Of a DNA stretch of 64,000 nucleotides, positions 1 through 42,995 are shown piece by piece (position 1 is the first letter of the stretch; each line of letters opens with the position of its first letter). Source of the stretch: Ranitomeya imitator (lineage: Eukaryota). The DNA lies in assembly GCF_032444005.1 (NCBI RefSeq), contig NC_091290.1, positions 150,846,001-150,910,000 of the forward strand, read 5' to 3'. A program made the translations under genes and the position numbers. The notes below the pieces were generated by a model. That model was given only the letters and a program-made list of their open reading frames with translations. It ran no database searches and was not told where the DNA came from.

Positions 1-3000
1 TATACAGAGATACATGATAAGATCCTGTCAGCAGTCACCACTAGGGGGAGCTCCCTGTATACAGAGATACATGATAAGATCCTGTCAGCAGCCACCACTA
101 GGGGGAGCTCCCTGTATACAGAGATACATGATAAGATCCTGTCTGCAGCCACCACTAGGGGGAGCTTCCTGTATACAGAGATACATGATAAGATCCTGTC
201 TGCAGCCACCACTAGGGGGAGCTCCCTGTATACAGAGATACATGATAAGATCCTGCCTGCAGTCACCACTAGGGGGAGCTCCCTGTATACAGAGATACAT
301 GATAAGATCCTGTCTGCAGCCACCACTAGGGGGAGCTCCCTGTATACAGAGATACATGATAAGATCCTGTCTGCAGCCACCACTAGGGGGAGCTCCCTGT
401 ATACAGAGATACATGATAAGATCCTGCTTGCAGCCATCACTAGGGGGAGCTCCCTGTATACAGAGATATATAAGATCCTGTCTGCAGCCACCACTAGGGG
501 GAGCTCCCTGTATACAGAGATACATGATAAGATCCTGTCTGCAGCCACCACTAGGGGGAGCTCCCTGTATACAGAGATACATGATAAGATCCTGTCTGCA
601 GTTACCACTAGGGGGAGCTCCCTGTATACAGAGATACATGCTAAAATCCTGTCTGCGGTCACCACTAGGGGGAGCTCCCTGTATACAGAGATACATGATA
701 AGATCCTGCCTGCAGCCACCACTAGGGGGAGCTCCCTGTATACAGAGATATATAAGATCCTGTCTGCAGCCACCACTAGGGGGAGCTCCCTGTATACAGA
801 GATACATGATAAGATCCTGTCTGCAGCCACCACTAGGGGGAGCTCCCTGTATACAGATATACATGATAAGATCCTGTCTGCAGCCACCACTAGGGGGAGC
901 TCCCTATATACAGAGATATATAAGATCCTGTCTGCAGCCACCACTAGGGGGAGCTCCCTGTATACAGAGATACATGATAAGATTATATCTGCAGCCACCA
1001 CTAGGGGGAGCTCCCTGTATACAGAGATATATGATAAGATCATGTCTGCAGCCACCACTAGGGGGAGCTCCCTGTATACAGAGATACATGATAAGATCCT
1101 GTCTGCAGCCACCACTAGGGGGAGCTCCCTGTATACAGAGATACATGATAAGATCCTGCCTGCATCCATCACTAGGGGGAGCTCCCTGTATACAGATACA
1201 TGATAAGATCCTGTCTGCAGCCACCACTAGGGGGGAGCTCCCTGTATACAGAGATACATGATAAGATCCTGTCTGCAGCCACCACTAGGGGGAGCTCCCT
1301 GTATACAGATACATGATAAGATCCTGTCTGCAGCCACCACTAGGGGGAGCTCCCTGTATACAGAGATACATGATAAGACCCTGTCTGCAGCCACCACTAG
1401 GGGGAGCTCCCTGTATACAGAGATACATGATAAGATCCTGTCTGCAGTCACCACTAGGGGGAGCTCCCTGTATACAGAGATACATAAGATCCTTTCTGCA
1501 GCCACCACTAGGGGGAGCTCCCTGTATACAGAGATACATGATAAGATCCTGTCTGCAGCCACCACTAGGGAGAGCTCCCTGTATACAGAGATACATGATA
1601 AGATCCTGTCTGCAGTTACCACTAGGGGGAGCTCCCTGTATACAGAGATACATGCTAAAATCCTGTCTGCGGTCACCACTAGGGGGAGCTCCCTGTATAC
1701 AGAGATACATGATAAGATCCTGCCTGCAGCCACCACTAGGGGGAGCTCCCTGTATACAGAGATACATGATAAGATCCTGTCTGCAGTCACCACTAGGGGG
1801 AGCTCCCTGTATACAGAGATACATAAGATCCTTTCTGCAGCCACCACTAGGGGGAGCTCCCTGTATACAGAGATACATGATAAGACCCTGTCTGCAGCCA
1901 CCACTAGGGGGAGCTCCCTGTATACAGAGATACATGATAAGATCCTGTCTGCAGTCACCACTAGGGGGAGCTCCCTGTATACAGAGATACATAAGATCCT
2001 TTCTGCAGCCACCACTAGGGGGAGCTCCCTGTATACAGAGATACATGATAAGATCCTGTCTGCAGCCACCACTAGGGAGAGCTCCCTGTATACAGACATA
2101 CATAAGATCCTGTCTGCAGTCACCACTAGGGGGAGCTCCCTGTATACAGAGATACATGATAAGATCCCGCCTGCAGTCACCACTAGGGGGAGCTCCCTGT
2201 ATACAGAGATACATGATAACATCCTGTCTGCAGTCACCACTAGGGGGAGCTCTCTGTATATAGAGATACATGATAAGATCCTGTCTGCAGCCACCACTAG
2301 GGGGAGCTCCCTGTATACAGAGATACATGATAAGATCCTGTCTGCAGCCACCACTAGGGGGAGCTCCCTGTATACAGAGATACATGATAAGATCCTGTCT
2401 GCAGCCACCACTAGGGGGAGCTCCCTGTATACAGAGATACATGATAATATCCTGTCTGCAGCCACCACTAGGGGGAGCTCCCTGTATACAGAGATACATG
2501 ATAAGATCCTGCCTGCAGCCACCACTAGGGGGAGCTCCCTGTACACAGAGCTACATAAGATCCTGTCTGCAGCCACCATTAGGGGGAGCTCCCTGTATAC
2601 AGAGATACATGATAAGATCCTGTCTGCAGCCACCACTAGGGAGAGCTTCCTGTATACAGAGATACATAAGATCCTGTCTGCAGCCACCACTAGGGGGAGC
2701 TCCCTGTATACAGAGATACATGATAAGATCCTGCCTGCAGTCACCACTAGGGGGAGCTCCCTGTATACAGAGATACATGATAACATCCTGTCTGCAGTCA
2801 CCACTAGGGGGAGCTCTCTGTATATAGAGATACATGATAAGATCCTGTCTGCAGCCACCACTAGGGGGAGCTCCCTGTATACAGAGATACATGATAAGAT
2901 CCTGTCTGCAGCCACCACTAGGGGGAGCTCCCTGTATACAGAGATACATAAGATCCTGTCTGCAGCCACCACTAGGGGGAGCTCCCTGTATACAGAGATA

Positions 3001-3769
3001 CATGATAAGATCCTGTCTGCAGCCACCACTAGGGGGAGCTCCCTGTACACAGAGATACATGATAAGATCCTGTCTGCAGCCACCACTAGGGGGAGCTCCC
3101 TGTATACAGAGATACATAAGATCCTGTCTGCAGCCACCACTAGGGGGAGCTCCCTGTACACAGAGATACATGATAAGATCCTGTCTGCAGCCACCACTAG
3201 GGGGAGCTCCCTGTATACAGAGATACATGATAAGATCCTGTCTGCAGCCACCACTAGGGGGAGCTCCCTGTATACAGAGATACATAAGATCCTGTCTGCA
3301 GCCACCACTAGGGGGAGCTCACTGTACACAGAGATACATGATAAGATCCTGTCTGCAGCCACCACTAGGGGGAGCTCCCTGTACACAGAGATACATGATA
3401 AGATCCTGTCTGCAGCCACCACTAGGGGGAGCTCCCTATATACAGAGATACATGATAAGATCCTGTCTGCAGCCACCACTAGGGGGAGCTCCCTGTATAC
3501 AGAGATACATAAGATCCTGTCTGCAGCCACCACTAGGGGGAGCTCCCTGTATACAGAGATACATGATAAGATCCTGTCTGCAGCCACCACTAGGGGGAGC
3601 TCCCTGTACACAGAGATACATGATAATATCCTGTCTGCAGCCACCACTAGGGGGAGCTCCCTGTACACAGAGATACATGATAAGATCCTGTCTGCAGCCA
3701 CCACTAGGGGGAGCTCCCTGTACACAGAGATACATGATAAGATCCTGTCTGCAGCCACCACTAGGGGGA
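1..3769 (+). repeat. 55-bp tandem repeat (52-bp variants), about 68 copies, intronic in the meckelin-like gene; each unit has a CTCF-like motif
   Basis: Unit TATACAGAGATACATGATAAGATCCTGTCTGCAGCCACCACTAGGGGGAGCTCCCTG; the array runs off the window start. Confidence 0.97.
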
Positions 3770-3877
3770 TAACTTTTAAAGTTTAATTTATGTAAGTACA
3801 TACGGTGAGCTTTTTAAAGGTTGTAAGCTTACATTATCCATTTTTGAAACTGTGAAATACTGTGATATTTGCGGCAG

Positions 3878-3994
3878 GTGTCGGTTTTCATCCTGACTCA
3901 CAAGTGTTATGGATATTATATCCACGGACGGTCGGTGCATGGACAGGCGGACGTCAGTATGGAGGCTATGCTGGATCACCTGCGTAAAGAGGAG
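3878..3994 (+). CDS. TMEM67: Meckelin (TMEM67)-like, coding exon (117 bp)
   Basis: cag|GTG...GAG|gtacgt; VSVFILTHKCYGYYIHGRSVHGQADVSMEAMLDHLRKEE matches the meckelin motif CFGYYIHGRSVHG. Confidence 0.93.
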
Positions 3995-4252
3995 GTACGT
4001 GCAGCGTCGGACCGGAGCACCTTGGTCCCTCCAGAGAAAATCATTCTTGGGGCCCACTATGTAGCTACATAGAAATAAATACAAGACCACCAATTGTGCT
4101 GTAAAACACGCTAATATCAGGGTATAATATACAGTAAGGTAGTACACGGCTTTATGATTTAGCAGAGGTTGGGGTAGCTCCCTCATAGAACAGAATGCAA
4201 TCCTACAGTATTATGGCCACCACGTACTCACTCGCTCACTGATATGTATATA

Positions 4253-4560
4253 CCGTATTTTTCGGACCATAAGACGCACCTAGGCTGTAGAGGAGGAAAA
4301 TCGAAAAAAATTAGAAATAAAAAATGTAGTCAAGTCTGTACTAATATCCCCCACTGCTGCTGCTCTGCTCCGGACTCCGGTAAGTATTGTAAGTACCAGG
4401 GCCCTGAGCAGGCAGAGGGGCACTCACTGGCCCCCATCGCACGCCGGTGTCCTCAACAGCGAGTGACCTCCCCCCTCCTGCTCAGGGCCCCGTTACTTAC
4501 CCGGGTAACGACGCCAGCCCTGCTGCTCGCTATTAAAGTGTAATGAATATTCACTGCTCT
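4253..4560 (+). mobile_element. Truncated Tc1/mariner (Tigger-like) non-autonomous fragment
   Basis: TA followed by CCGTATTTTTCGGACCATAAGACGCA, a typical left terminus; no right terminus seen, right boundary approximate. Confidence 0.4.
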
Positions 4561-4870
4561 CACTATCCATGGGCGTGGAGAGCAGTGAATGTTCATTTCT
4601 CTTTAGCAGTGGGCACAGTCTTTATCTTCTGCCTCCTGTCACCCGTTGCTCCACAAGTGTCGGGCAGGCTCCCCTGACTGCCGCTATTAGCAACACACCA
4701 CTGGCTGGGGGGCCCTAGTCATCTGCCGGCCCTGTGTGCCTGCAGATGTCAGTGCCTGGGCCCACCGGACAATCCACTAGTTGGCCAGTCCGACCCTGGG
4801 TACATGCCATCTTCTAGAGGCCGGAATCCTTATCAGACAATCAGATTGTGACTTTTTCTGTCTCTCGCAG

Positions 4871-4987
4871 GAAAACTTGTGTCCCCTGCGCGGCTTGGAG
4901 CCCGGATCGGAGGTGCAGACGTTTGAGGTGCTGCTGAGCGAGCGGGTGCGGGAGCAGTACGAGAAGATCATGCAGCCCCTCATGGAG
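4871..4987 (+). CDS. TMEM67: Meckelin-like, coding exon (117 bp)
   Basis: cag|GAA...GAG|gtaatg; ENLCPLRGLEPGSEVQTFEVLLSERVREQYEKIMQPLME (human ENLCSQRGL...QTFE). Confidence 0.93.
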
Positions 4988-5100
4988 GTAATGGAGACCC
5001 TGCTGTTCCTGGCCACCAGCTATGTATAATGAGGGGGCAGGGGCGCTGTGCTTGTATGGGGGGTGCGGGGCTGCCGATGCTTAATCTGTTCTTGTTTTAG

Positions 5101-5205
5101 GCTCCCAGGGGCCCAAAGGGAGGAAACGACAAGAACCCAATGTTACAGCAAAGGATAAAAACTTATTACACCATTAACCGCTTCCTGTCCTGCTTCCTGG
5201 AGCAC
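5101..5205 (+). CDS. TMEM67: Meckelin-like, coding exon (105 bp)
   Basis: tag|GCT...CAC|gtgagg; APRGPKGGNDKNPMLQQRIKTYYTINRFLSCFLEH, in phase with neighbouring exons. Confidence 0.9.
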
Positions 5206-5702
5206 GTGAGGGGACTCTTTTAATTTCTATGTATGGTGTTAAAGGGGTCACATACTATTATGGGGAGGAGGGTCCCGTGATTTATGCTAAAATATGGGTT
5301 GGGGGGGGACTCTGCTTCATGTAAATCATGAACAATCATAAGAAGTGTATTTAGAATTTATTTGTTCCACTTTTTCTAGCTCTCTGCTTGCTGAGCGGGA
5401 ACGAAAACCTTTCCGGTTACAGGCGCAGAGTGAAAACTCGTCCGAACCGAAAGTTGTCATCAGCTTTGGGTTTGTTACACAGTATCCAGTGTAAACGACA
5501 GGCTGGAAGTGAGACTGAGACATTGTGACAAACCCTCTGCTGTGAGAAGTGTTAGGTCCTGTTCATGGTCAGCAAGCAGAGATTTTGAAAACGGTGAAGA
5601 AGTCCAGTACATGATCTGCTTGTACTGAAGGTGAGGTGTCGGATGGGGGGTGTCCTGGTGTTTCCTCTCCGTAGATAATGCCGCACCCCGTGTGTCCCGC
5701 AG

Positions 5703-5805
5703 GTCTATAAGGACATGGATTACTTGGTGAAGGACAAGCTGTTCCTGGAGAGCGTCCTGGACGTGGAGTTCCAGCAGCCGATCGACAGATCCATATTATA
5801 TACCG
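5703..5805 (+). CDS. TMEM67: Meckelin-like, coding exon (103 bp)
   Basis: cag|GTC...G|gtgag; VYKDMDYLVKDKLFLESVLDVEFQQPIDRSILYT (human MDYFIKDKLLLERILGMEF). Confidence 0.93.
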
Positions 5806-5940
5806 GTGAGAGGACGCCGACAACCCACATACTTCATTTACTAATAAGTTGTCACCCTTCTTTCCCAGAATCCTGAACAGTAAGTCCATCTCGTCCTATT
5901 CAATCCATCCTCTGCTCCAAGACATCTGGGAAACTGCCGG

Positions 5941-5989
5941 ACCACAACTCCCAGCATCCTGACGGCCATAAACTGCTGGGAGTTGTAGT
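5941..5989. repeat. Short foldback element (ACAACTCCCAGCA...TGCTGGGAGTTGT)
   Basis: 16-bp inverted arms around a 17-bp loop; a type of short palindromic repeat common in anurans. Confidence 0.7.
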
Positions 5990-6087
5990 TTAGCAGGAGT
6001 TGGATCAGTCTCGTTTGCGCCTCCGGACCCCAATTGTTCCCTCTCCTGGATCCGCACCCCCATCATCCTCCTATCTTTCCATTGCAG

Positions 6088-6230
6088 ACGATCGGTTCCG
6101 CTTCAGCCGGAATCTGTTCTACAGTAACGAGCTGGTGCTGCTGCTCTTCGACACCCTCCTGTTCTGCGTCATCGATCTGGGGACACAGAATTTTGTGCTG
6201 GCGACGATTATCACCTTCGTGGTGCAGACG
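6088..6230 (+). CDS. TMEM67: Meckelin-like, coding exon (143 bp), last transmembrane segment
   Basis: cag|AC...ACG|gtaagg; FSRNLFYSNELVLLLFDTLLFCVIDLGTQNFVLATIITF (human LLIFDLLFFCVVDLACQNF). Confidence 0.93.
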
Positions 6231-6339
6231 GTAAGGGTCTAGTCTGGAGTCTGTGAGCTAGATTTCAATATGGCTTCCGTCCACCCCCCAGAGGCTTACC
6301 CCGGGGGCCACACATGCACTAGGCTTGCTTCCGGAAGCT

Positions 6340-7262
6340 TCATTTTACCATGTCTTGTTCTAGAAAATGGGGAAAAAATTCCAATTGTGTTTAAATTGCA
6401 AAAAAAAAGTGCAATCTCACACTTGTTTTTTGTTTGGCTTTTTTGCTAGGTTCATTAAATGCTAAAACTGAGCTGCCATTATGGTTCTCCAGGTCATTAC
6501 GAGTTCATAGACACCAAACATGTCTAGGTTCCTTATTATCTCAGTGGTGACAAGAAATCCAAACTTTGTTTAAAAAAAAAAAAAAAAAATTTGCTCCATT
6601 TTCCGATACCTGTAGCATTTCCATTTTTCGAGATCTGGGGTCAGGTGGGGGCTGATGTATTTATTGATAACGTTTTTGTGCAGATATGTTCTTTTGATCT
6701 CCCGTTATTGCATTTTAATCCAATGTTGTGGTGACCAAAAAAAACCGGAATTCTGGCGTTTTGACTTTTTTTTTTTATCGGTACGGCGTTTAGCGATCAA
6801 GATAATCTTTTTTTATTGATCGGGCGATTCTGAACACGGCGATACCAAATATGTGTAGGTGTGTTTTTTTTTTTGTTTTTTTTAATTATTGTTTTATTTT
6901 GAATGGGGTGAATTGGGGGTGATTTAAATTTTTATATATTTTTTTAATTTTTGTAATATTTTTAAAAACTTTTTTTTTTTTTTTTACTTTTGTCATGCTT
7001 CAATAGTCTCGATGGGAGGCTAGAAGCTGATATAGCCTGATCGGCTCTGCTACTCACAGCAAGACCGGAACTGACAACCATAGAGGTCTACGGGGACCTC
7101 AGGTTGTCATGCCAACACACCGGTGACCTGCAATCTCGTGTCTGGGGTCACCGGTGTGCATATTTCAGTCCCAAAGCAGTGTTTGACAGTGGCATTTAAC
7201 GGGTTAAGTAGTGATTCCACCCGCGGCTATAGCGGACACATGTCGGCTGTTCAAAAGCAGAA
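6340..7262 (+). mobile_element. Terminally truncated copy of the 1.3-kb piggyBac-like MITE family, in the last meckelin-like intron
   Basis: Collinear with 54840-56114 (AAAGTGCAATC, TTCATAGACACCAAACATGTCTAG, GGGCGATTCTGAAC); boundaries approximate. Confidence 0.8.
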
Positions 7263-7320
7263 AGCTCAGGGCGGCCTCGATCAGTAACCGCAGATTCTTG
7301 CCTTTTTCTCCATTTTGCAG

Positions 7321-7401
7321 TTTGTGAAGATTTTGCGATCAGAAATTGGAAGGAAGAATTTGTCCATGCAAACGATGGTGGAGGAAAACTTCCTAATATG
7401 A
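7321..7401 (+). CDS. TMEM67: Meckelin-like, terminal coding exon (81 bp)
   Basis: ttttgcag|TTT...TGA; FVKILRSEIGRKNLSMQTMVEENFLI* (human ...GQKNLASKTLVDQRFLI*). Not in the ORF track. The six exons splice to 221 aa plus stop. Confidence 0.92.
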   Translation, partial: FVKILRSEIGRKNLSMQTMVEENFLI

Positions 7402-7408
7402 GACGGCG

Positions 7409-8546
7409 GAGAGCGGCGGCCATGTCCAGATACAGGCACGTACGGCAGAGAGCGGCGGCCATGTGCAGATACAGGCACGTACGGCAGAGAGCGGCGGCCA
7501 TGTGCAGATACAGGCACGTACGGCATAGAACGGCGGCCATGTGCAGATACAGGCACGTACGGCATAGAACGGCGGCCATGTGCAGATACAGGCACGTACG
7601 GCATAGAGCGGCGGCCATGTGCAGATACAGGCACGTACGGCAGAGAGCGGCGGCCATGTGCAGATACAGGCACGTACGGCATAGAACGGCGGCCATGTGC
7701 AGATACAGGCACGTACGGCAGAGAGCGGCGGCCATGTCCAGATACAGGCACGTACGGCAGAGAGCGGCGGCCATGTGCAGATACAGGCACGTACGGCAGA
7801 GAGCGGCGGCCATGTGCAGATACAGGCACGTACGGCAGAGAGCGGCGGCCATGTGCAGATACAGGCACGTACGGCAGAGAGCGGCGGCCATGTCCAGATA
7901 AAGGCACGTACGGCAGAGAGCGGCGGCCATGTGCAGATACAGGCACGTACGGCAGAGAGCGGCGGCCATGTGCAGATACAGGCACGTACGGCAGAGAGCG
8001 GCGGCCATGTGCAGATACAGGCACGTACGGCAGAGAGCGGCGGCCATGTGCAGATACAGGCACGTACGGCATAGAGCGGCGGCCATGTGCAGATACAGGC
8101 ACGTACGGCAGAGAGCGGCGGCCATGTGCAGATACAGGCACGTACGGCATAGAGCGGCGGCCATGTGCAGATACAGGCACGTACGGCAGAGAGCGGCGGC
8201 CATGTCCAGATACAGGCACGTACGGCAGAGCGGCGGCCATGTGCAGATACAGGCACGTACGGCAGAGAGCGGCGGCCATGTGCAGATACAGGCACGTACG
8301 GCAGAGAGCGGCGGCCATGTGCAGATACAGGCACGTACGGCAGAGAGCGGCGGCCATGTGCAGATACAGGCACGTACGGCAGAGAGCGGCGGCCATGTGC
8401 AGATACAGGCACGTACGGCAGAGAGCGGCGGCCATGTGCAGATACAGGCACGTACGGCAGAGAGCGGCGGCCATGTGCAGATACAGGCACGTACGGCAGA
8501 GAGCGGCGGCCATGTGCAGATACAGGCACGTACAGTAGAGAGCGGC
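7409..8546 (+). repeat. 39-bp GC-rich minisatellite, about 29 copies, starting 8 nt after the meckelin-like stop
   Basis: Unit GAGAGCGGCGGCCATGTGCAGATACAGGCACGTACGGCA. Confidence 0.97.
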
Positions 8547-8630
8547 CGCAATCAGAATCCCCCAATTTAAAAATCTAACAACTAATGTATCAAGAGGTTT
8601 CTCGAAATTCTCCACAAATTCTTATTTAAT

Positions 8631-8727
8631 GACTCCTGCAGTCCCATGTAACACCACAGATAACACAGTGATAACTCTCATAGTACAGATAATGTCTATG
8701 GTGTTACATGGGACTGCAGGGGACATG
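8631..8727. mobile_element. Short foldback element, same family as 63858-63950
   Basis: CTGCAGTCCCATGTAACACCA...TGGTGTTACATGGGACTGCAG inverted arms. Confidence 0.75.
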
Positions 8728-8794
8728 TACTTGCCAAACTCTCCCCTCCCCAGTCTGTCTTGAACGCTGCAGCCAGGATCATATTCCTCACTAT

Positions 8795-8956
8795 TAGTGA
8801 TGAGCGAATATACTCGTTACTCCAGATTTCCCAGCATGCTCGGGGGTCCTCCGAGTATTTTTTAGTGCTCGGAGATTTAGTTTTCATCGCCGCAGCTGAA
8901 TAATTTACATCTGTTAGCAGCATAAGTACATGTGGGGGTTCCCTAGCAACCAGGCA
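8795..8956 (+). mobile_element. Left half of a palindromic hAT MITE, truncated at the hairpin centre
   Basis: Begins TAGTGATGAGCG and matches the left arm of 51935-52222; ends abruptly at the TAT-rich repeat. Confidence 0.8.
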
Positions 8957-9520
8957 TATTATTATATCACTCTATATTATTATTATTACATCACACTATA
9001 TTATTATTATTGTTATTATTCTTACAATCATTTGATTATTATTACACTATACTATTATTATTATTATTGTTACAATCGCCAATATTACATCACACTATAC
9101 TATTATTATTATTGTTATTATTATATCACTCTATATTATTATTATTACATCACACTGTGGTATTATTATTATTATTATTGTTATTATATCACTCTATATT
9201 ATTATTACATCACTCTATATTATTATTATTATTGTTACAATCATTGATTATTATTACACTATACTATTCTTATTGTTACAATCACCAATATTACATCACA
9301 CTATACTATACTATTATTATTATTATATCACTCTATATTATTATTATTACATCATACTATATTATTATTATTGTTATAATCATTGATTATTATTACACTA
9401 TACTATTATTATTATTGTTATTATTATTATATCACTAATATTACATCACTCTATACTATTATTATTATTATTGTTACAATCGTTCTTATTAATATTGTTA
9501 CTATTGTTCTATTATCATGA
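8957..9520. repeat. (TAT)n-rich compound repeat
   Basis: TATTATTAT runs interleaved with TACATCACACTA/TATCACTCTA units. Confidence 0.92.
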
Positions 9521-9629
9521 TGAGTAGAGTCCTTGTGTTTGTGGACAGAACTACAAGTTGCAGCCAGCTGTGTCAGTAGTGGGGCTGCTGCGCCTTGTAG
9601 TTCCCTGACTGAGCCTTGTGTCCCCCCAG

Positions 9630-9784
9630 GTGTGCCCAGGTATCACTCCCAGTCCCCCAGCATGAACGACAGGAAGGAGTTTGTCTTCTCCTTTAATGCC
9701 ATGGCCTCCTCCATGCACGGGGGCAGCGGCTCCTACTACCACCAGCAGGTCAGCTACCAGGACATCAAGCCCTGTGTGATGTGA
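9630..9784 (+). CDS. FOXF1: Forkhead box F1 terminal exon (exon 2); exon 1 not found in the window
   Basis: ccccccag|GT (phase 1); (G)[64 protein letters not shown] and YQDIKPCVM are FOXF1-type (FOXF2 has DRKDFVLNFNG). Confidence 0.93.
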
Positions 9785-10173
9785 GGACCCTCGGATCGGG
9801 GCGGACCCCCAGTGTCACAGACCCCCAGTGTCACAGACCCCCAGTGTCACAGACAGTGAAGGACCATGCGTGGTGCTGATCCACAGGGACGAGACCACCT
9901 GCAACAATGTATCCGCCAGACCCTAATGTATCTCCCGCTGGGGGTCTCCAGACGTCGGTGGTCCTGCTGCAGGCCCGGAACCCTCCACACTTTGTGGCAC
10001 CTGTGATGTTTCCTTATATTTATTGATCCTGTACCGGCAGATCCGCGCCCCCTGCACTTATCACCAGGACTTTGGGGGCTTTTCTTGGCAATATTTGCCG
10101 TGTGAAGGGTTTTTGTTTTTTTTTTAACAATTTTGGTTGCTGTAAATTCAGAAGATTCGATGTTCGGTTTCTA

Positions 10174-10206
<33 letters not shown>

Positions 10207-10332
10207 CTTCGCTATAAACGACGCTTTGTATTTGGGAATTTTCCGATCTTATTTTTCTCTGCACTGTAAAAAAAAAAATATCATTTTTTTGTGTTTGTAA
10301 ATTTAAAAAAAAAAAAAAAAGGAAAAAATCAA

Positions 10333-10338
10333 AATAAA
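10333..10338 (+). promoter_or_regulatory. Candidate polyadenylation signal of FOXF1
   Basis: AATAAA about 550 nt after the stop, followed by T-rich sequence. Confidence 0.5.
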
Positions 10339-10529
10339 ATTTTTATTCTATTTGTTAATTTTAAGAGAAATTCTCATTATTTTATTTATTTAATAGATGT
10401 CACGGTAATGAGGAGATCGGCCATTATTCCCTTATGTCACAACACAAATGTAATTATTAAATGATCAAAGTGGAATTGCCCCAAACAGAGAAAAGGAGAA
10501 ATCCGAGAAATCTGATGGTGAAACCACTA

Positions 10530-10755
10530 CAAGTAGAAGTACTACAAGTACCATAAATACCACTATTACCACTAGAGGTACTACAAGTACCACTATTACC
10601 ACTAAAAGTACCACTATTACCACTATTATGAATACAAGTGCTACAAGTACCACTATCACTATTACCACTACAAGTACTACAAGTACCACTATTACCACTA
10701 CAAGTACCACTATTACCACTATTATGAATACAAGTGCTACAAGTAACACTATCAC
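10530..10755. repeat. Low-complexity ACTACAAGT/ACCACTATT compound repeat
   Basis: 9-bp-based repeated motifs. Confidence 0.85.
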
Positions 10756-11452
10756 TACTGCTCAAGTGTTCAGGGGGAGATGAGTGTCTGCAGCGTCTGT
10801 GGGGAGAAGAGGAAATAAAATGAAACAAACAATAACCTGCTGTGGAAGGGGGTGACTGTGACTTGGGGCCGGGAACAGCAGCCGCTCAGCACTAATCACA
10901 GCAAGATCCAAAATCCTTCATTCCCAAGAATCAGAACATTAAAGAAAGTTCATCTCTATAAAACTGCAGCCACTTTATGGGATGAATCCTCTGCAAATCT
11001 GCACAGAAATACTAATAACATAAAACCCATCAATCAATGTTCTGTTTCTGGATCTCTGCAGAATCTTTCTCCATCTCAGGGAAGGTTATTGGGACAATCA
11101 GTGATTATCTGATCAATCTCCATCATCCTCTGCTGAGGGTCTCGCTGCAGTCTTCATGGTTCTTTCTATTTGTTTCTTCCGGTATCTGATACATTCACCA
11201 TCTCATTATCAGGTATTTTGTGTCCGTTTTTGGTTCTGTAATCAGAGAAGAAGAAGAAGAATCTCCTCACTGAGCTGCTCCAGCCGGAGAGACTGTGCTG
11301 TTCTGTAGGCCACAGATATAAATGTGTAAGTGTAAGCCCCCCGGATCGGAGGCCGAGCCCCCATATAAGAGGTGGCACAGGCTCCTGGTGGGAAATAATC
11401 ACTTGTAACAGAGACAGATCGATGTCATTCTCTGAATCCAGACTCCTGCTCA

Positions 11453-11620
11453 GGCCTCGTTCACACCGTCAGTATTCGCTCAGTATTTACATCAGTATTT
11501 GTAGCCAAAACCAGGAGACGAACAATCGGAGGAAAAGCGTAAGAGAGACGTCGCCACTTCTGGATTATCACCAGGATGGCTACAAACACTGATGTAAATA
11601 CTGCGCGTGTGAACGTGGCC
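11453..11620. mobile_element. Short MITE (GGC-starting TIR)
   Basis: GGCCTCGTTCACAC...GTGTGAACGTGGCC, with internal arms CAGTATTTACATCAG/CTGATGTAAATACTG. Confidence 0.75.
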
Positions 11621-11626
11621 TGTGGA

Positions 11627-13068
11627 GAGTAATGCTGTGTCTCACCAGTAATGCTGCCCCTCGCCAGTAATGCTGCGCCTCTCCAGTAATGCTGCCCCTC
11701 GCCAGTAATGCTGCTCCTCACCAGTAATGCTTCCCCTCACCAGTAATGCCGCTCCTCACCAGTAATGCTGCGCCTCGCCAGTAATGCTGCACCTCCCCAG
11801 TAATGCTGCCCCTCGCCAGTAATGCTGCTCCTCGCCAGTAATGCTGCTCCTCGCCAGTAATGCTGCGCCTCACCTGTAATGCTCCTCCTCGCCAGTAATG
11901 CTGCACCTTGCCAGTAATGCTGCACCTCGCCAGTAATGCTCCTCCTCGCCAGTAATGCTGCGCCTTGCCAGTAATGCTGCACCTCGCCAGTAATGCTGCT
12001 CCTCGCTAGTAATGCTGCACCTCGCCAGTAATGCTGCGCATCGCCAGTAATGCTGTGCCTTGCCAGTAATGCCGCGCCTCACCAGTAATGCTGCCCCTCA
12101 CCAATAATATCATGCCTCACCAGTAATGCTGCCCCTCACCAGTAATGCTGCCCCTCACCAGTAATGCCACGCTTCACCAGTAATGCTGCCCCTCACCAGT
12201 AATAACGTGCCTCACCATAATGCTGCCCCTCACCAGTAATATCGCCCCTCACCAGTAATGCTGCCCCTCACCAGTAATGCCGCACTTCACCAGTAATGCT
12301 GCCCCTCACCAGTAATCTCGTGCCTCACTATAATGCTGCCCCTGACCAGTAACGCTGCCCCTCACAAGTAATATCGCCCCTCACCAGTAATGCTGCCCCT
12401 CACCCGTAATATCGCTCCTCACCAGTAATGCTGCCCCTCACCAGTAATATTGCGCCTTACCAGTAATGCTGCCCCTCACCAGTAATATCGCCCCTCACCA
12501 GTAATGCCGCACTTCACCAGTAACGCTGCCCCTCGCCAGTAATCTTGTGCCTCACCATAATGCTGCCCCTGACCAGTAACACTGCCCCTCACCAGTAATA
12601 TCGCCCCTCACCAGTAACGCTGCTCCTCACCAGTAATATCGCCCCTCACCAGTAACGCTGCCCCTCAACAGTAATGCCGCACTTCACCAGTAACGCTGCC
12701 CCTCGCCAGTAATCTCGTGCCTCACCATAATGCTGCCCCTGACCAGTAACGCTGCCTCTCACCAGTAATGCTGTATTTCACCAGTAATGCTGCCCCTCAC
12801 CAGTAATATCGCCCCTCACCAGTAATGCTGCCTCTCACCACTAATATTGCGCCTCACCGGTAATGCTGCCTCTCACCAGTAATATTGCGCCTCACCAGTA
12901 ACGCTGCCCCTCACCAGTAATATCGCCCCTCACCAGTAATGCCGCATTTCACCAGTAATGCTGCCCCTCACCAGTAATATCGCCTCTCACCAGAAATGCT
13001 GCCCCTCACCAGTAATGCTGCCCTTCACCAGTAATATCGCCCCTCACCAGTAATATCGCGCTATGTGC
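11627..13068 (+). repeat. 19-bp minisatellite, about 75 copies
   Basis: Unit CCAGTAATGCTGCCCCTCA with variants. Confidence 0.96.
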
Positions 13069-13135
13069 CCATGTTTGCGGATTTGTGTGCGGATTTTTCT
13101 GCACCGTTTTTGAAAAATCCGCAGGTAAAACGCTC

Positions 13136-13638
13136 TGCCATTTTCCGATACCCGTAGCGTCTCCATTTTTCGGGATCTGGGGTCGGGTGAGGGCTTAATT
13201 TTTGCGAACCGAGCTGACGTTTTAGTGATACCATTTCGGTGGAGATACGTTCTTTTCATCGTCCGTTATTGCATTATAATGCAATGTTGCGGCGACCAAA
13301 AAAAAAGTAATTCTGGCGTTTCAATTTTATTCTTGCTACGCTGTTTAGCGATCAAGTTAATGCTTTTTTTATTGATAGATCGGGCGATTCTGAACGCGGC
13401 GATGCCAAACATGCTTAGGATTGATTATTTTTTTTAATTTTGAATGAGGCTGTCAGAGTTTAACAGCAGCATTTAACTAGTTAATAGGCGTGGGTGGATC
13501 GTGATTCCACCCGCGCCTCTTGTGGGCACATGTAAGCTGTTCAAAACAGCTGACATGCCCCAGCTTTGATGCGGGCTCACCGCCGGAGCGGGGGATACTG
13601 ATATCGGACGTACTATCCCGTCTGATGGCAGTAAGGGG
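13136..13638 (+). mobile_element. Internally deleted piggyBac-like MITE, right end intact
   Basis: Homologous to 54840-56114; ends GGGG|TTAA (13639-13642). Confidence 0.8.
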
Positions 13639-14336
13639 TTAATAAATAACATTTCCCTCATGTCGCCTTTACATCGGCACAATTTATTAAATGTTATTTT
13701 ATTTGTTACCATTTTAGGAGGTTTTATAATTTTTTTATTTTTTCAAGGAAATTTACAAAAGTTATTTTTGTAGGGACCTATCCCGGTTTGAAGTCACTTT
13801 GAGGGTCCTAGATAGTGGAAAACCCCTAAAAGTGAAACCATTGTAAAAACAGCACTTTCCTCCCGATATCCTGAGTGTTCAGGAAGCCGCAGGGACATTC
13901 TATGTAGAGGAAGTCTGGCTCTGCTCGGTGGGCCGGGACCCTCGCCGTGTCACACGCACTCATCTCCACCATTGTCCTCCTGTCCGCAGAGGCGCAAACA
14001 ATGGAGACGTATTTATAACATCAGCGGGAACCGCTTCACTTCTTGGAGGATTACATTTAACCTTTACAAAAAAAATCCCCCCTAATATTTCTGCAGCTGG
14101 GAAAGCTGGGTAGCCAGCAGCGTTCGCGGTCCCTCACTCAAATGACGGCACATCGCTAGCGCACGCCCATTACAAACAATGGCGGCGTTAACGGACTGCG
14201 TTACACCACGCTATGCCGCGGTGTAACGTAGTCCGTTAAACGGGTTCACATAACGTAATGTGAGCCTAGCCTTAAGCTTGCAATTATGAACAATACTGAC
14301 TTACATAGTGTGTGATATCCGAGCCTCGTTCCTCCA

Positions 14337-14372
14337 CCCCGACGCACGTTTCATCCACACTTCTTCAGGGGG
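14337..14372 (-). ncRNA. Degenerate minimal type I hammerhead ribozyme motif
   Basis: Minus strand CCCC CTGAAGA AGTGTGGAT GAAA CGTGCG TC GGGG: stem I, core and GUC triplet present; stem II weak. Confidence 0.45.
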
Positions 14373-14395
14373 CGTCAATCACTATGTATATGTCA

Positions 14396-16188
14396 GGAGG
14401 AGCAATGCTCTGTAGCATATATCACTGTGTATCTGTCAGTAGGTGGAGGAGCGATGCTCTGCAGGAGGGCAGTGGTGTAATAACCTGCAGATATATCATT
14501 ATGGAGCGGTCAGGAGGAGCGATGCTCTGCAGGAGGGCAGTGGTGTAATAATCTGCAGATATATCATTATGGAGCGGTCAGGAGGAGCGATGCTCTGCAG
14601 GAGGGCAGTGGTGTAATCATCTGCAGATATATCAGGATGGACCGGTTAGGAGGAGCGATGCTCTGCAGGAGGGCACTGGTGTAATAATCTGCAGAATATA
14701 TATCACTGTATCTGTCAGGGGGTGGAGGAGCAATGCTCTGCAGAGGGGCAGTGGTGTAATAATCTGCAGAATATATATCACTGTGTATCTGTCAGGTGGA
14801 GGAGCGATGCTCTGCAGGAGGGCAATGGTGTAATCATCTGCAGATATATCACGATGGAGCGGTCAGGAGGAGCGATGCTCTGCAGGAGGGCAGTGGTGTA
14901 ATCATCTGCAGATACATCAAGATGGACCGGTTAGGAGGAGCGATGCTCTGCAGGAGGGCAGTGGTGTAATAATCTGCAGAATATATATCACTGTGTATCT
15001 GTAAGGAGGTGGAGGAGCAATGCTCTGCAGAGGGGCAGTGGTGTAATAATCTGCAGAATATATATCACTGTGTATCAGTCAGGAGGTGGAGGAGCGATGC
15101 TCTGCAGGAGTGCAATGGTGTAATCATCTGCAGATATATCACGATGGAGCGATCAGGAGGAGCGATGCTCTGCAGGAGGGCAGTGGTGTAATCATCTGCA
15201 GATATATCAGGATGGACCGGTTAGGAGGAGCGATGCTCTGCAGAGGGGCAGTGGTGTAATAATCTGCAGAATATATATCACTGTGTATCTGTCAGGAGGT
15301 GGAGGAGCGATGCTCTGCAGGAGGGCAATGGTGTAATCGTCTGCAGATATATCACGATGGAGCGGTCAGGAGGAGCGATGCTCCGCAGGAGGGCAGTGGT
15401 GTAATCATCTGCAGATATATCACGATGGAGCTGTCAGGAGGAGCGATGCTCTGCAGGAGGGCAGTGGTGTAATCATCTGCAGATATATCAGGATGGACCG
15501 GTCAGGAGGAGCGATGATCTGCAGGAGGGCAGTGGTGTAATCATATTCAGATATATCAGGATGGACCGGTCAGGAGGAGCGATGCTCTGCAGAAGGACAG
15601 TGGTGTAATCATCTGCAGATATATCAGGATGGACCGGTCAGGAGGAGCGATGCTCTGCAGGAGGGCAGTGGTGTAATCATCTGCAGATATATCAGGATGG
15701 ACCGGTCAGGAGGAGCGATGCTCTGCAGGAGGGCAGTGGTGTAATCATCTGCAGATATATCAGGATGGACCGGTCAGGAGGAGCGATGCTCTGCAGGAGG
15801 GCAGTGGTGTAATCATCTGCAGATATATCAGGGTGGACCGGTCAGGAGGAGCGATGCTCTGCAGGAGGGCAGTGGTGTAATCATCTGCAGATATATCAGG
15901 ATGGAGCGGTCAGGAGGAGCGATGCTCTGCAGAGGGCAGTGGTGTAATCATCTGCAGTAGATGGACCGGTCAGGAGGAGCGATGCTCTGCAGATGGCAGT
16001 GGTGTAATCATCTGCAGTAGATGGACCGGTCAGGAGGAGCGATGCTCTGCAGGAGGGCAGTGGTGTAATCATCTGCAGATATATCAGGATGGACCGGTCA
16101 GGAGGAGCGATGCTCTGCAGGGGGCAGTGGTGTAATCATCTGCAGTAGATGGACCGGTCAGGAGGAGCGATGCTCTGCAGAGGGCAGT
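14396..16188 (+). repeat. About 68-bp tandem repeat, about 26 copies, with variant subunits
   Basis: Unit GATATATCAGGATGGACCGGTCAGGAGGAGCGATGCTCTGCAGGAGGGCAGTGGTGTAATCATCTGCA. Confidence 0.95.
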
Positions 16189-16284
16189 GTGTATCACTTG
16201 CTGTATTCTGGATACATTGGAGCTGTTCCTTCCTGGTGATTAGGGATCTGTATGTGGAGACCCAGAGTTTATATCATGTGATGT

Positions 16285-16303
16285 GAGCGACACCTAGTGG
16301 CCA
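16285..16303 (-). promoter_or_regulatory. Candidate CTCF site in unique sequence
   Basis: Minus strand TGGCCACTAGGTGTCGCTC versus consensus TGGCCACCAGGGGGCGCTA. Confidence 0.5.
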
Positions 16304-19300
16304 AAATGTGCAAAGCAGCGAATCCTCCACAGTGATCTGCAGACAGGCGGTTAGGCTACAACGCACATTAGCGGAACGCTAATGTGAACGTAGCCTTAGT
16401 GAAATAAAGTCAGAGAATTCCTGCAGGTGATGAGAGAGGAGCGCACTGATCGAAAGGGACAGGATAGAGCGCCACAGCAGCACAGAGGATTTCAGCGGAC
16501 GGTACGGAGGGCCTGGTGTCCTGGGTTCACTCTGACTGAGGACAGTGAGATTCCTCCTCTCAGACATCTTAGAAAATGAAAACAAGAGACCTCAAATGAA
16601 ACCTGCTCTTCCTTTTCATGACCTGTTGGTGGGCACTGATAGACATATTGATGACCGAGCCATCAGGTAATTCTGTGGTGGCTCAGTGGTTAGCTCCATT
16701 ACCTTTTGATGTTTGGGTCCCTAGTACAATTTTGACTGAGGTCGGAGTGATTCTACCTCTTAGTTGTATTTTAGAAATTGCAAATGGACCTGCCCTAGTT
16801 TTTCCTGATCTTCCCATTGGTGCTGGTAGTTATATCAATGACTTTGACAAAACATATCTTCCGAGCAGCACGGTGGCCCAATGGAAAGGACTGGTGCTTA
16901 GCGGCATGGGAGTCCAGGGTTCTAATCCCACCACGAGAAATTGCAAGTGAATCTCTTATAGTTTTTCTTGATCTTCCCATTCGTGCTGGTAGTAATATCA
17001 ATGACTTCGGAGAAGATTACTTTGTGAGTAGCACGGTGGCCCAGTGGAAAGTACTGGTGCTCTGCAGCATGGGAGTCCAGGGTTCTAATCCCACCATGGG
17101 AAATACCAAATGGACCTGCTCTAGTTTTTCCTGATCTTCCTGGTGCTGGTAGTAATATATATGACTTCCGAAAAGGTTATTTTCAGAGCAGCACGGTAGC
17201 CCAGTGGAAAGGACTGGTGCTCTGCAGCATGGGAGTCCAGGGTTCTAATCCCACCATGGATGACATCTGCAAGGAGTTTGTATGTTCTCCCTGTGCTCAG
17301 GTGGGCGGCTCTAAAAACATACAGGTGTGGACAAGTGCTGTGGCAAATGATGTGTCACCTGAACAGCATCCAGGAGGGCTGCTTGCCTGTCCCCCCTTTG
17401 GGCAAGTATCCTGATCAGCTGTTATATATGCAGCTCAGCCTAGCTGAGCTGCACAAAGTCCTTTTGGACTTAGCCAAAATTTTCACCATTTCTTCCCTCT
17501 CATTTACCTAAATCCTAATATTCCTCCTGTCTTCACAAACACAGGTCAGTTACTTGACACAAGTAACACTTTCATCACTGTATGTCTTTAGATCATGGGT
17601 GGCCACCCACCTGAGCACAGGGAGAACATACAAACTCCTTGCAGATGTCATCCATGGTGGGATTAGAACCCTGGACTCCCATGCTGCAAAGCACCAGTCC
17701 TTTCCACTGGGCTACCATGCTGCTCTGAAAATAACCTTTTCGGAAGTCATAGATATTACTACCAGCACTAGGAAGATCAGGAAAAACTAGAGCAGGTCCA
17801 TTTGGTATTTCCCATGGTGGGATTAGAACCCAGAACTCCCACGCCACAAAGAACCTGTGCTTTCCACTGGGCCACCGTGCTGCATTAAACCCCACTATGA
17901 GAAATTGCAAATGGACTTGCTTTAGTTTTCTTATCTTCCCATTGGTGCTGGTAGTAATATCAATGACTTCTGCAAGTGTTATATTCTGAGCAGCACGGTA
18001 GCCCAGTGGTTAGGACTGGTGCTTTGCAACATTGGAGTCCAGGGTTCAAATCCCACAATGGGAAATACCAAATGAACTTTTGTTTTTTCCTGATCTTCCT
18101 GGTGCTGGTAGTAATATCTATGACTTCCGAAAAGGTTATTTTCAGAGCAGCACGGTAGCCCAGTGGAAAGGACTGGTGCTCTGCAGCATGGGAGTTCAGG
18201 GTTCTAATCCCACCATGGATGACATCTGCAAGGAGTTTGTCTGTTCTCTGATGGGTGGGCACCCATGATCTAAAGACATGCAGTGATGAAAGTGTTATGT
18301 GTGTCAAGTAAGTATCCTGTGTTTCTGAAGATGGAAGGAATATCAGGATTTAGAGAAATGAGTGGGAAGAAATGGTGAAAATTTTGGTTAAGTCCAAAAG
18401 GACTTTGTGCAGCTCAGCTAGGCTGAGCTGCATATATAACAGCTGATCAGGATACTTGCCCAAAGGGGGGACAGGCAAGCAGCCCTCCTGGATGCTGTTC
18501 AGGTGACACATCATTAGCCACAGCACTTGTCCACACCTGTATGTTTTTAGAGCCGCCTACCTGAGCACGGGGAGAACATACAAACTCCTTGCAGATGTCA
18601 TCCATGGTGGGATTAGAACCCTGGACTCCCATGCTGCAGAGCACCAGTCCTTTCCACTGGGCTACCGTGCTGCTCACAAAGTAACCTTCTCCGAAGTCAT
18701 AGATATTACTACCAGCACCAGGAAGATCAGGAAAAACGAGAGCAGGTCCATTTCATATTTCCCATGGTGGGATTAGAACCCTGGACTCCCATGCTGCAGA
18801 GCACCAGTCCTTTCCACTGGGCTATTGTGCTGCTTGCAAAGTAACCTTCTCCGAAGTTATAGATATTACTACCAGCACCAGGAAGATCACGAAAAATGAG
18901 AGCAGGTCCATTTCATATTTCCCATGGTGGAATTAGAACCCTGGACTCCCATGCTGCAGAGCACCAGTCCTTTCCACTGGGCTACCGTGCTGCTCACAAA
19001 GTAACCTTCTCCGAAGTCATTGATATTACTACCAGCACGAATGGGAAGATGAAGAAAAACTATAAGAGATTCACTTGCAATTTCTCGTGGTGGGATTAGA
19101 ACCCTGGACTCCCATGCCGCTAAGCACCAGTCTTTTCCACTGGGCCACCGTGCTGCTCGGAAGATACGTTTTGTCAAAGTCATTGATATAACTACCAGCA
19201 CCAGGAAGATCAGGAAATACTAGGGCAGGTCCATTTGCAATTTCCCATGGTGGGATTAGAACTCTGGACTCCTATGCTGCAGAGCACCAGTCCTTTCCAC

Positions 19301-19981
19301 CGGGCTACCATGCTGCTCACAAAATAACCTTTTCTGAAGTCATTGATATTACTACCAGCACCAGGAAGATCAGGAAAAACTAGAGCAGATGCATTTGGTA
19401 TTTCCTATGGTGGGATTAGAACCCTGGACTCCCATGCAGAAAAGCACCAGCTCTTTCCACTGGCCCACTGTGCTGCTCAGAAGACAAGTTTTGGCAAAGT
19501 CATAGATATTACTTCCAGCACCAATAGGAAGATCAGGAAAATCTAGAGCAAGTCAGTTTGCGATTTCTTATGGTGGGATTTGAACCGTGGTCTCACATGC
19601 TGTAAAGCACCAGGCCTTTCCACTGGGCCACAGTGCTGCTCAGACGACAGTCTTTGGCAAAATCATTTATATCACTCATTGCACCAATGGGAAGATCTAG
19701 AAAAACTAGAACAACTTAGAGGTAGAATTACTCATACCTCAATCAGAATTGTACTAAGGACCCCAGCATTGCCAGGTAATCGAGCTAAACACTGAGCTAC
19801 CATGCTGCTCAAGAAAGAGACTTTGGTAAAATCATTGCTATCAGCAAAAACTAGAAGAGGGCCATTTGCAATTTCCCATGGTGGGATTAGAACCGTGCAC
19901 TCAAATGCTGCAAAGCACCAAGGATTTCCACTGGGCGACCGTGCTGCTCTAAAGAGAAACTATGGCAAAATCGTTGATATG

Positions 19982-25409: not shown

Positions 25410-28400
25410 ATGGATTATAAAAGCCGGGACACTAACTGGCTCTCACAGATATCTACAATTTTTGGGGACAATCCAGATAAGAATATTGTTGTTAATGTTA
25501 ATACTGATGTTTTAATGGCAGACAGACGGCAGCTAAGGGATCTTTTGTTTAAACGCACCAAAACCTGGTGGAATAGTAAAACTCTTGAACAGTATTTACA
25601 ACGTAAATTTGTACCCAGAGGGCTGCGTGTGCAAATATTCCCCTCATTCATAATTGATGATGTGGGGATAAAAAACAAATGGGAGGAAGCTTGTAATAGC
25701 TGTTCCAGAACTTTTTTGGAGCTGTTAATTTCCCTTGATCAGAAAAAAATGGAAGTAATAGAGGGACAGATACGGATCATTCAAGATAGGCTTAAAGAAA
25801 AAATGACAACAGTGGAAATGACTGTATTTGAGGAGGAATTAAATAGAGACTACATTAAGTGGGAAGAGGATCTCAAGAAAACCAAAACTCAGAAATTTCA
25901 GAGGGATCAAGCTGATTATCAGCAGAATATGGTTTACAGATGGAGAAAGAACGAAAACATTATTCGTACAAATTCCATTGCTTCAGTTTCGAGTAGTTCT
26001 TCACACATATCAACTGAGTCGAATGCATCAGCCAATCCAAGGCGATATAATACTCGCCAAAGGACTAATGGGCGGAATTATAATAAGTATCAGGAGCCAG
26101 CACAAAGTAACAGTCTAAAGGTAATTAATTTATCTTACACTGTTTTGTCACCAGCTCAAATTTCGGTTCTCTCTTTGGGTTTGACTTTTTGCCCCACGTC
26201 TAATTTTGATGCCTTTGTAGCAATTAAGGATGTTTTCTTGTTTGCACGAAAACTTCTTTTGAAGAAGTTCCATGAAGGTAAAAACCATTCTAATACACTC
26301 TTTTCAACAGAGGCAGAAATGGAAGCACTTCGCGCACTAGAAGAACTACTTCTCGAGCAAGAGGAACAAGCACCAAGTAAGTTTCCGGATTTCATAAGAA
26401 AAAAGTCAACAAATTTCCCACCCATCTCCTTGAATTCATCTGTGGAGATTTTTGTTAGGATGGTTTGTAATGAGTTGTATCAACTTAAGATACACCGACC
26501 ATTTGATAACCTAACAGTGGCACAGCGGCAAGCATTAAACGAACTAAAGAATATGAAACAAGTCGTCTTTAAACCGGCCGACAAAGGCGGTAATGTGGTG
26601 GTCTGGCCAGTTCAACTTTATGAAAAGGAAGCATTCAAACAGCTTAATAATACTGAATGCTATCAGAAATTAGCTTCAGACCCCACAACCGCCTTTCAAA
26701 GGCAATTGTTTAATACCCTGGACGACGCACTAGAGAGAGGCCTTATCACTAAAAGCATCTGGGAGGGCTTACGCACTAACCATCCTGTAATTCCAACAAT
26801 ATATTTCCTACCTAAGGTGCATAAAGATCTGTCCAACCCACCCGGTAGACCAATAGTATCAGGGTGTGGTGGACTGAATGAACCGGTCTGTAAATTTCTG
26901 GATTACTATTTGAAGCCCTGTGTAGAGGAATTACCCTCCTATGTAAGAGATTCTGCAGATGTTCTTCAGAGATTACAAGGGATAACATTGGAACCAGATA
27001 TGTTTCTTATTACTGGAGATGTAGAATCTCTTTACACCTGCATAAAGCATGAATAGGGAATCTCAGCAGCAAGATTCTTCTTGTCAAATAAAGGCATTGA
27101 TGGTGAACTATTATGCTTACTATTGGAATTGTTGGAGCATGCATTGACCCATAACTATTTTACGTTCAAGGACAGATATTATGTACAGCAACGAGGCGTG
27201 GCTATGGGGGCGGCTTTTGCGCCCTCATATGCCAACCTCTTTATGGGTCAATGGGAACGTGAACATATGTTGCCATACCTGAATGATGTTCAAGGTCCCT
27301 CTGTGGTGAGTTGGATGCGATTCATCGATGACCTGTTGTTTATTTGGCAGGGGGAGAGAAAGGAGCTGGACAAATTTCTTATGCATTTGAATGACAACGA
27401 TTGGAATGTAAAGCTGACCTTTAAAGTTACCACCAACAAGATGGATTTCTTGGATCTACAACTAACGGTGGACCAGATGGGTTGTATTCACAGTACAATT
27501 TTCCGGAAAGAAACAAGTACTAATTCTGTGTTACATGCGAAGTCAGCACATCCGGGACACACTATTAGGGCGATTCCAAAGGGCCAGTTTATTCGCGCTA
27601 AAAGAATCTGTGATACTGATAAAGAATTTGAGTCACAGGCCCGAGATATGACCTGTAGATTTTTGGATCGAGGATATAAATTTCAGGACATCAATAGAGG
27701 TTATCAACAAGCCAAAGAACTGGATCGAAATCTGTTATTACAGAATAAAGTCACAAAAAAAGGAGATTCTCGATTGCGAATAATTACGAATTACCATGGG
27801 AGATGGAATGATATGAACAGTATTTTTAATCAGTTCTGGACAATTCTTAAACAGGATCCAAGTCTTGCAAAGTTTGTAGAGGATCGGCCATTGGTTGTGG
27901 CAAGGAGAAGTAGAACCATTGGTGAGACTATCACACATAGCCACTATGTAGCACCTAAATCCAGCTTTATCTTTGACTCAAGAGGACCCAAATGGGGATC
28001 ACGTGCATGTGGCACATGTAGTGCCTGTAAATACATGGTCAAGACGGAAACATTCAGTAATTCTACTAAAACACGGGATTTCAAAATTGTTCACCCGATT
28101 AACTGCAGAACTATGTCAGTTATATACTATTTGACCTGCCCATGTGGGCTTATTTATGTGGGACTTACGTCAAGACAACTTCGGGTGCCAATATTAGAAC
28201 ATATAAGAGACATTAGATCCGCGAGACTCTTGGACTCGGAAAATTTGCAGAAGGAGGACTTTGTGAAATTAAAAACGATACCAGCTCATTATCGAGAATT
28301 CCATCCTTCTGGTCCGATTGAACTCCAAGTAAGAGGTATTGATGTAGTTCACTTGGGCATTCGCGGGGGCAATATCATGAAAAGACTAGCCCAAAAGGAA

Positions 28401-28478
28401 TGTCGTTGGATCACCAATTTGAGAACAGTGAAGCCACACGGTCTTAATGACCAGTGGGGCTTTTCTAGTTTTCTGTAA
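25410..28478 (+). pseudogene. PLE reverse transcriptase/GIY-YIG endonuclease ORF with a single premature TAG at 27054-27056
   Basis: ORFs 25410-27056 and 27081-28478 share a frame; motifs KPADKGG, LPKVHK, PGRPIVS, GDVESLYT, GVAMG..FAPSYANLFM, RFIDD, CGTCSAC linker, VIYYLTCPCGLIYVGLT. Confidence 0.95.
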
Positions 28479-42811: not shown

Positions 42812-42995
42812 CTGAGTGTCTGGGGGGGGAAAAAACAGTCATCAACATTCTCAAAAAGAGCAGAATCCCACCCCAAATCCTGACGTTCTGCAGCTTCATG
42901 ACAAACTTTAGGGTACATACTACAGCAAGCAGCCATATTCCAGGCACCTGCTGGACCCCAATATACGGGAGCCCCTGTATAGACCCCATACTGAC

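Follow-up and report, generated by a model that had tools for sequence, protein, structure and literature searches.

A FOXF1 last exon parted from its forkhead exon and joined to TMEM67 in Ranitomeya imitator: probably the 3' remnant of a second, truncated copy or of a rearranged haplotype

TMEM67 and a lone FOXF1 exon

The stretch of R. imitator DNA analysed here, which at its full length of 64 kb we refer to as the window, begins inside a gene that we identified as TMEM67 (meckelin); its 3' end is intact and consists of six collinear exons (3878-7401, + strand). These exons were assessed one by one as pieces of 26-47 residues, with no joined gene model, and when each was scanned singly five of the six matched Pfam PF09773, collinearly and over positions 605-825 of 825. 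The sixth (5101-5207) gave no match in the Pfam scan and was assigned by its position, open frame and splice sites. AG/GT splice sites were present in all six exons and the stop codon is at 7399-7401. At the window start, a 57-bp satellite of ~67 copies occupies a TMEM67 intron (1-3769). The features on this side, up to the point at which FOXF1 sequence begins, are as follows.

~3878-3996, 4871-4988, 5101-5207, 5703-5806, 6090-6232 and 7321-7401, + strand: last six coding exons of TMEM67 (Pfam, open frame, splice sites)
7403-8546, no strand: 39-bp satellite, 29 copies (TRF, 97% matches)
8629-8726, no strand: small palindromic repeat element (window self-BLAST; second copy at 63854-63955)
8795-8956, + strand: left arm and central loop of a hAT-like hairpin MITE (alignment to a full copy at 51936-52222)

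The 39-bp satellite begins 2 nt past the TMEM67 stop codon and is followed by ~80 unique bases before the palindromic element at 8629. We found no canonical poly(A) signal (AATAAA or ATTAAA) on the + strand between the TMEM67 stop codon and position 10333, where the signal of FOXF1 lies; as TMEM67 has no canonical signal of its own in this arrangement, its transcripts here would either use a non-canonical site or extend through the FOXF1 exon as far as the poly(A) signal of that gene. Splicing of the penultimate TMEM67 exon (phase 0) into the FOXF1 exon at 9630 (phase 1) would be out of frame.

The last coding exon of FOXF1 is located at 9630-9784 (+ strand), is intact and in phase 1, and ends in a stop codon at 9782-9784. 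Its reading frame (9632-9781) translates to 50 residues, not counting the stop, and this peptide matched FOXF1 C-termini with 84-92% identity and E-values down to 4e-20, as against ~52% identity to FOXF2; the C-terminus of human FOXF1 was outside the close matches in this protein comparison. The AG of the splice acceptor ends at 9629, and a poly(A) signal scan placed an AATAAA at 10333-10338 in the 3'UTR. A word search with the 50-residue peptide identified 13 short models, all from other species and with 88% identity at most, and no gene model for the FOXF1 copy in the window was present in the protein collection. Exact look-ups of two other ORFs of the window, of 548 aa and 284 aa, matched no recorded protein.

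A tblastn search of the 64-kb window with a full-length FOXF1 (P0015, in which the Forkhead domain occupies residues 71-156) found no forkhead exon, decayed ones included; the sole match was that of residues 341-393 to 9629-9781, with nothing better than E 4 in the rest of the window. A six-frame search of the window for forkhead motif patterns likewise gave zero matches. Thus, of the parts expected of a functional FOXF1, the conserved C-terminal exon, the phase-1 acceptor and the gene's own 3'UTR are here, but the window lacks the forkhead exon that would precede them on that strand. The original prediction, made from the sequence by itself, had described just such an orphan exon with its phase-1 acceptor and 3'UTR, and translation, protein matches and locus alignment bear this out; its claim that the window holds no forkhead ORF agrees with the tblastn and motif searches, and the 2.2 kb back to what it called a meckelin-like stop are indeed filled by the 39-bp satellite, the palindromic element, half a MITE and a TAT-rich array, with no forkhead exon among them. 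Because it lacks the promoter and exon 1, together with most of the intron, the copy as read from its sequence would be unable to make a FOXF1 protein.

Complete FOXF1 loci and the block shared with them

A word search with P0015 identified FOXF1 proteins in dendrobatid frogs, whose clusters contain those of R. imitator (XP_069595547.1) and R. variabilis, and four complete loci were then retrieved for comparison.

L001: R. imitator GCA_958301615.1, 1.6-Mb contig; FOXF1 intron of 5.1 kb
L002: Dendrobates tinctorius, 12-Mb contig; FOXF1 intron of 11.2 kb
L003: R. imitator VGP assembly GCA_032444005.1, CM064367.1 (158 Mb), at 151.89 Mb; FOXF1 intron of 5.8 kb
L004: R. variabilis CM120275.1 (1.118 Gb), at 620.57 Mb; FOXF1 intron of 2.9 kb

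All four have a forkhead exon 1 with the phase-1 donor CAAG/GTAAGT, one intron and then exon 2, the two exons being 2.9-11.2 kb apart; the phase of the acceptor in the window agrees with this donor. The protein encoded at L003 (P0173, XP_069595547.1) has 375 residues, its exon 1 being at 10001-10976 and its exon 2 at 16766-16920 of the retrieved sequence. This complete locus, for which the VGP assembly has an annotation on CM064367.1, is the working FOXF1 gene of R. imitator; it is an intact locus in the same species and may be allelic to the copy in the window. FOXF1 is intact in R. imitator and, since a complete gene exists elsewhere in the species, nothing essential is missing. In R. imitator the complete gene sits close to one end of a small chromosome (158 Mb), and in R. 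variabilis it is in the middle of a 1.118-Gb chromosome; either the karyotypes truly differ or one of the assemblies is wrongly scaffolded. We also observed that four public FOXF1 models (P0001, P0003, P0004 and P0116) have unrelated or frame-shifted sequence joined to a correct exon 2; in P0116, from the older R. imitator assembly, exon 1 is frame-shifted and the model reads through into a stretch that matches the 3'UTR in the window.

Alignment of the window to these loci identified the following features.

8956-8957, no strand: junction between TMEM67-side sequence and FOXF1-intron sequence (homology to L001 and L003 starts at 8957-8960)
8957-9505, + strand: TAT-rich minisatellite, corresponding to the 3' portion of the intronic FOXF1 array, which measures ~0.9 kb at the complete loci (TRF, alignment to L001 and L003)
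9506-9629, + strand: unique tail of the FOXF1 intron, 124 nt, with pyrimidine tract and AG acceptor (100% identity to L001)
9785-10360, + strand: FOXF1 3'UTR (98% identity to L001, with differences chiefly in homopolymers and microsatellites)
8957-19700, + strand: collinear block shared with the complete FOXF1 loci of R. imitator (alignment up to the end of the retrieved flanks)

The window is collinear with the complete loci solely from 8957 downstream, over at least 10.7 kb that begin in the tail of the intron, run through exon 2 and the 3'UTR and continue for 10 kb or more downstream, and the satellite arrays within this block differ in size. Such collinear homology, which takes in intron and flanks and has a sharp boundary, is as expected of a partial segmental duplicate. 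A processed retrocopy was ruled out by the retained intron tail and the more than 10 kb of downstream sequence. The truncated FOXF1 copy was absent from the part of the older R. imitator assembly that we retrieved.

In its unique parts the block has ~0.8-1.3% substitutions relative to the complete R. imitator loci. Over two unique stretches, of 1103 and 769 nt, the window has 9 and 10 substitutions relative to L003 and 8 and 9 relative to L001, as against 1 and 7 between L001 and L003; in unique stretches R. variabilis is 6-12% divergent from each of these three. The window has 14 sites private to it, L003 has 5 and L001 has 3, and based on this excess the window copy is a recent, slightly deeper branch within R. 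imitator. A divergence of ~1% fits a young paralogue and a divergent or allelic haplotype alike.

Exon 2 itself, over all 155 nt, has no difference to L001, L003 or even L004 of R. variabilis, and eight differences to D. tinctorius; with the 3'UTR 98% identical to L001, this assigns the window to R. imitator. At 1% divergence only ~1.5 changes would be expected in an exon of this length, and as the copy is so little diverged and the exon is invariant between the Ranitomeya species, its unchanged state is uninformative on selection.

Two other differences in the block were observed. The 19-bp satellite downstream of FOXF1 extends over 1.4 kb in the window (11628-13054), ~0.13 kb in L001 (19630-19764) and 0.65 kb in L004 (17978-18629), and ~1.2 kb that is present in L001, L003 and R. 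variabilis is missing from the window between 10626 and 10764.

A junction at the tip of a MITE hairpin

The MITE at 8795-8956 stops where, by alignment to the full copy, its second arm would start. The full hAT-like element (51936-52222) is 287 bp long, has a target-site duplication of 8 bp (CATAGGAC) and takes the fold of an almost perfect hairpin (dG -112.6 kcal/mol, z -22.6). The break is therefore at the centre of a hairpin-forming palindrome, as is characteristic of palindrome-mediated rearrangement; hairpin tips are known to be fragile, which speaks for a real break. That the MITE was cut at its hairpin centre and that 8956 marks a likely breakpoint had both been proposed from the sequence of the window; we confirm the first by the alignment to the full copy and the second by the start of homology to the complete FOXF1 loci at 8957. 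Relative to the two genes, the break lies 0.67 kb before exon 2, in the TAT-rich array, and 1.55 kb downstream of the stop of TMEM67.

No part of L003:1-15718, which comprises 10 kb upstream of the gene, exon 1 and the first 4.7 kb of the intron, was found in the window. Conversely, window 1-8956 had no match in L003 or L004, and window 3770-8975 had none in L002 and low-complexity matches only in L001. The 10 kb that precede each complete FOXF1 locus contained no TMEM67 exon, and the TMEM67 exon peptides had no significant match at the four loci; the MITE and the TMEM67 3' end are both absent from the complete loci, and the 39-bp satellite has no counterpart at any of the four. A derivation of the 39-bp satellite from the satellites of the FOXF1 intron was considered and rejected by comparison.

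No repeat is shared across the junction, the left side being the MITE half and the right side the TAT array, so it does not have the position in a repeat common to both source loci that marks a chimeric contig. As the two sides share no repeat, a real break is favoured over a false overlap. There are no assembly gaps, in that no N occurs in the 64-kb window, which also speaks for a real junction.

Origin of the truncated copy

Our preferred explanation, which is based on comparison of sequences, is that the lone exon is probably the 3' stump of a truncated second copy of the FOXF1 region, or of a rearranged haplotype, and that the junction is real DNA; the junction taken by itself is most likely real frog DNA. 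We propose that DNA would have broken within the TAT-rich array of a FOXF1 intron, 0.67 kb before exon 2, and that this end may then have been joined to a break at the tip of the hairpin-forming MITE, 1.55 kb past the stop codon of TMEM67. As to which of the two forms the copy takes, a recent partial segmental duplicate is a reasonable candidate at somewhat under even chances, and a rearranged haplotype of the sequenced animal is a more doubtful one. In either case this would be an ordinary kind of thing, a truncated copy of a gene region, as it would be if it proved an assembly fault. The junction is supported by one assembly.

An assembly artefact is accordingly the explanation to be set against a real junction, and we consider it improbable though of real weight. 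On this view each haplotype of the frog would carry a single, ordinary FOXF1 locus, the junction would not exist in the animal, and a chimeric read or molecule, or a misresolved graph, would have joined the 3' flank of TMEM67 to a retained haplotype copy of the 3' region of FOXF1. A divergence of ~1% from L003 is what is expected of a retained second haplotype, and false duplications are documented in primary assemblies, those of the VGP included (10.1101/2021.04.09.438957, 10.1101/729962). The window is moreover very rich in tandem repeats by TRF, as is the genome in repeats, and the placement of FOXF1 on a 158-Mb chromosome in R. imitator and on a 1.118-Gb chromosome in R. variabilis hints at scaffolding trouble in one of the two. 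To our knowledge TMEM67 and FOXF1 are on different chromosomes in other vertebrates, which we also count in favour of an artefact. However, there is no repeat common to both sides of the junction that could have caused a false overlap, the 64 kb are without a gap, and at normal depth a long-read assembly rarely lets a lone chimeric read through.

The remaining alternatives retain a normal gene at this place, or deny the frog one. In the first of these, a TMEM67 segment would have been inserted in the FOXF1 intron, with exon 1 located upstream of the window start and still spliced to exon 2. The window does begin inside a TMEM67 intron, such that exon 1 could sit further upstream, and the FOXF1 introns of dendrobatids already span 2.9 to 11.2 kb; but this requires an insertion of at least 9 kb, probably of the whole of TMEM67, in the same orientation and bringing its own splice sites, it would leave the 4.7 kb of intron that adjoin exon 1 on the far side of the insertion, and the annotated complete FOXF1 elsewhere makes it unnecessary. 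We regard it as very improbable. Hardly credible at all is the collapse or drop-out of a GC-rich exon 1 from an otherwise correct locus, or a true loss of FOXF1 from the frog. The public models P0001, P0003 and P0004, which join junk to exon 2, do suggest that exon 1 is often lost from assemblies, but here at least 15.7 kb are missing and an unrelated gene, TMEM67, is in their place, exon 1 is 59% GC and was assembled in three Ranitomeya assemblies (both of R. imitator and that of R. variabilis), and a complete FOXF1 of 375 residues is annotated in R. imitator.

Three options had been offered in the original prediction, and these results separate them. Its first, that an assembly collapse removed a GC-rich exon 1, fails for the reasons just given, and the conservation of exon 2 that was advanced in its support is non-discriminating, the exon being identical even in R. 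variabilis. The second, a segmental duplicate that broke within the FOXF1 intron, is the best fit, with a complete FOXF1 in the same species that is ~1% different. The third, a true deletion or rearranged allele, is a less likely candidate. A decayed MTHFSD nearby had been taken as support for a duplicate; this argument does not hold, as visible decay could not arise at 1% divergence and the 3' exons read open. These MTHFSD-like 3' exons (42258-44284, - strand) are open, so that a claim of pseudogenisation is not obviously right for this part, and the last coding exon has an in-frame 30-bp tandem duplication at 42535-42595. A Pfam scan of the MTHFSD exon pieces found no family above the cut-off.

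The truncated copy has counterparts in several known systems. An orphan copy of Dmrt1 exon 2 has been described on another chromosome of the R. imitator VGP assembly, in a preprint that notes that genomic raw data were unavailable for verification (10.1101/2025.06.11.659201). The two cases are alike in species and most likely in assembly, each being an exon of an essential developmental gene that lies away from the intact gene; whereas the Dmrt1 copy is a single exon, that of FOXF1 extends collinearly over at least 10.7 kb, and its boundary could be placed to the nucleotide, at the tip of a MITE hairpin. Haplotypic false duplications (10.1101/2021.04.09.438957, 10.1101/729962) resemble the FOXF1 copy in placing a second copy at heterozygosity-level divergence in one assembly, but they usually occur at contig ends by gaps, while this copy is joined gaplessly to an unrelated gene, by way of a junction whose sides have no repeat in common. 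The models P0001, P0003 and P0004 have, like the window copy, the exon 2 peptide without a forkhead domain; in them, which are models only, the N-terminus is unrelated or frame-shifted, whereas in the window exon 1 is truly off-locus and an intact copy exists elsewhere.

The junction itself can be compared to palindrome-mediated rearrangements, of which the human PATRR translocations are an example. With these it shares a breakpoint at the tip of a strong hairpin palindrome and an AT-rich partner, and it differs from them in that the partner is a TAT-rich minisatellite, with no second palindrome, and that a reciprocal product was not seen within the window.

The case is cautionary, in that an apparent loss of the forkhead exon from an essential mesoderm gene resolves to a truncated extra copy in a species that has a normal FOXF1, and it marks a spot in the R. 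imitator reference that deserves scrutiny. After Dmrt1 exon 2, it is the second case in which a fragment of a developmental gene lies astray in the giant, repeat-rich genome of this frog. A real junction would offer a cleanly mapped break at the tip of a transposon hairpin, and in that event TMEM67 may have borrowed a 3' end. It is unlikely that the junction is both real and either alters the expression of TMEM67 or is allelic to FOXF1. In the former case a break at a MITE tip would have put the end of FOXF1 behind TMEM67, with TMEM67 transcripts ending on the last exon and 3'UTR of FOXF1; in the latter the reference animal would be heterozygous for a rearrangement that knocks out one FOXF1 allele.

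Transposon ORFs were observed elsewhere in the window at 25410-28478, 58161-62040 and 39021-39872, and include two reverse-transcriptase elements. The reverse-transcriptase element at 58-62 kb has an ORF of 935 aa as well as a gag-like ORF that matches the LAP2alpha family, and a BED zinc-finger ORF, also among these transposon ORFs, is the remnant of a hAT-type transposase.
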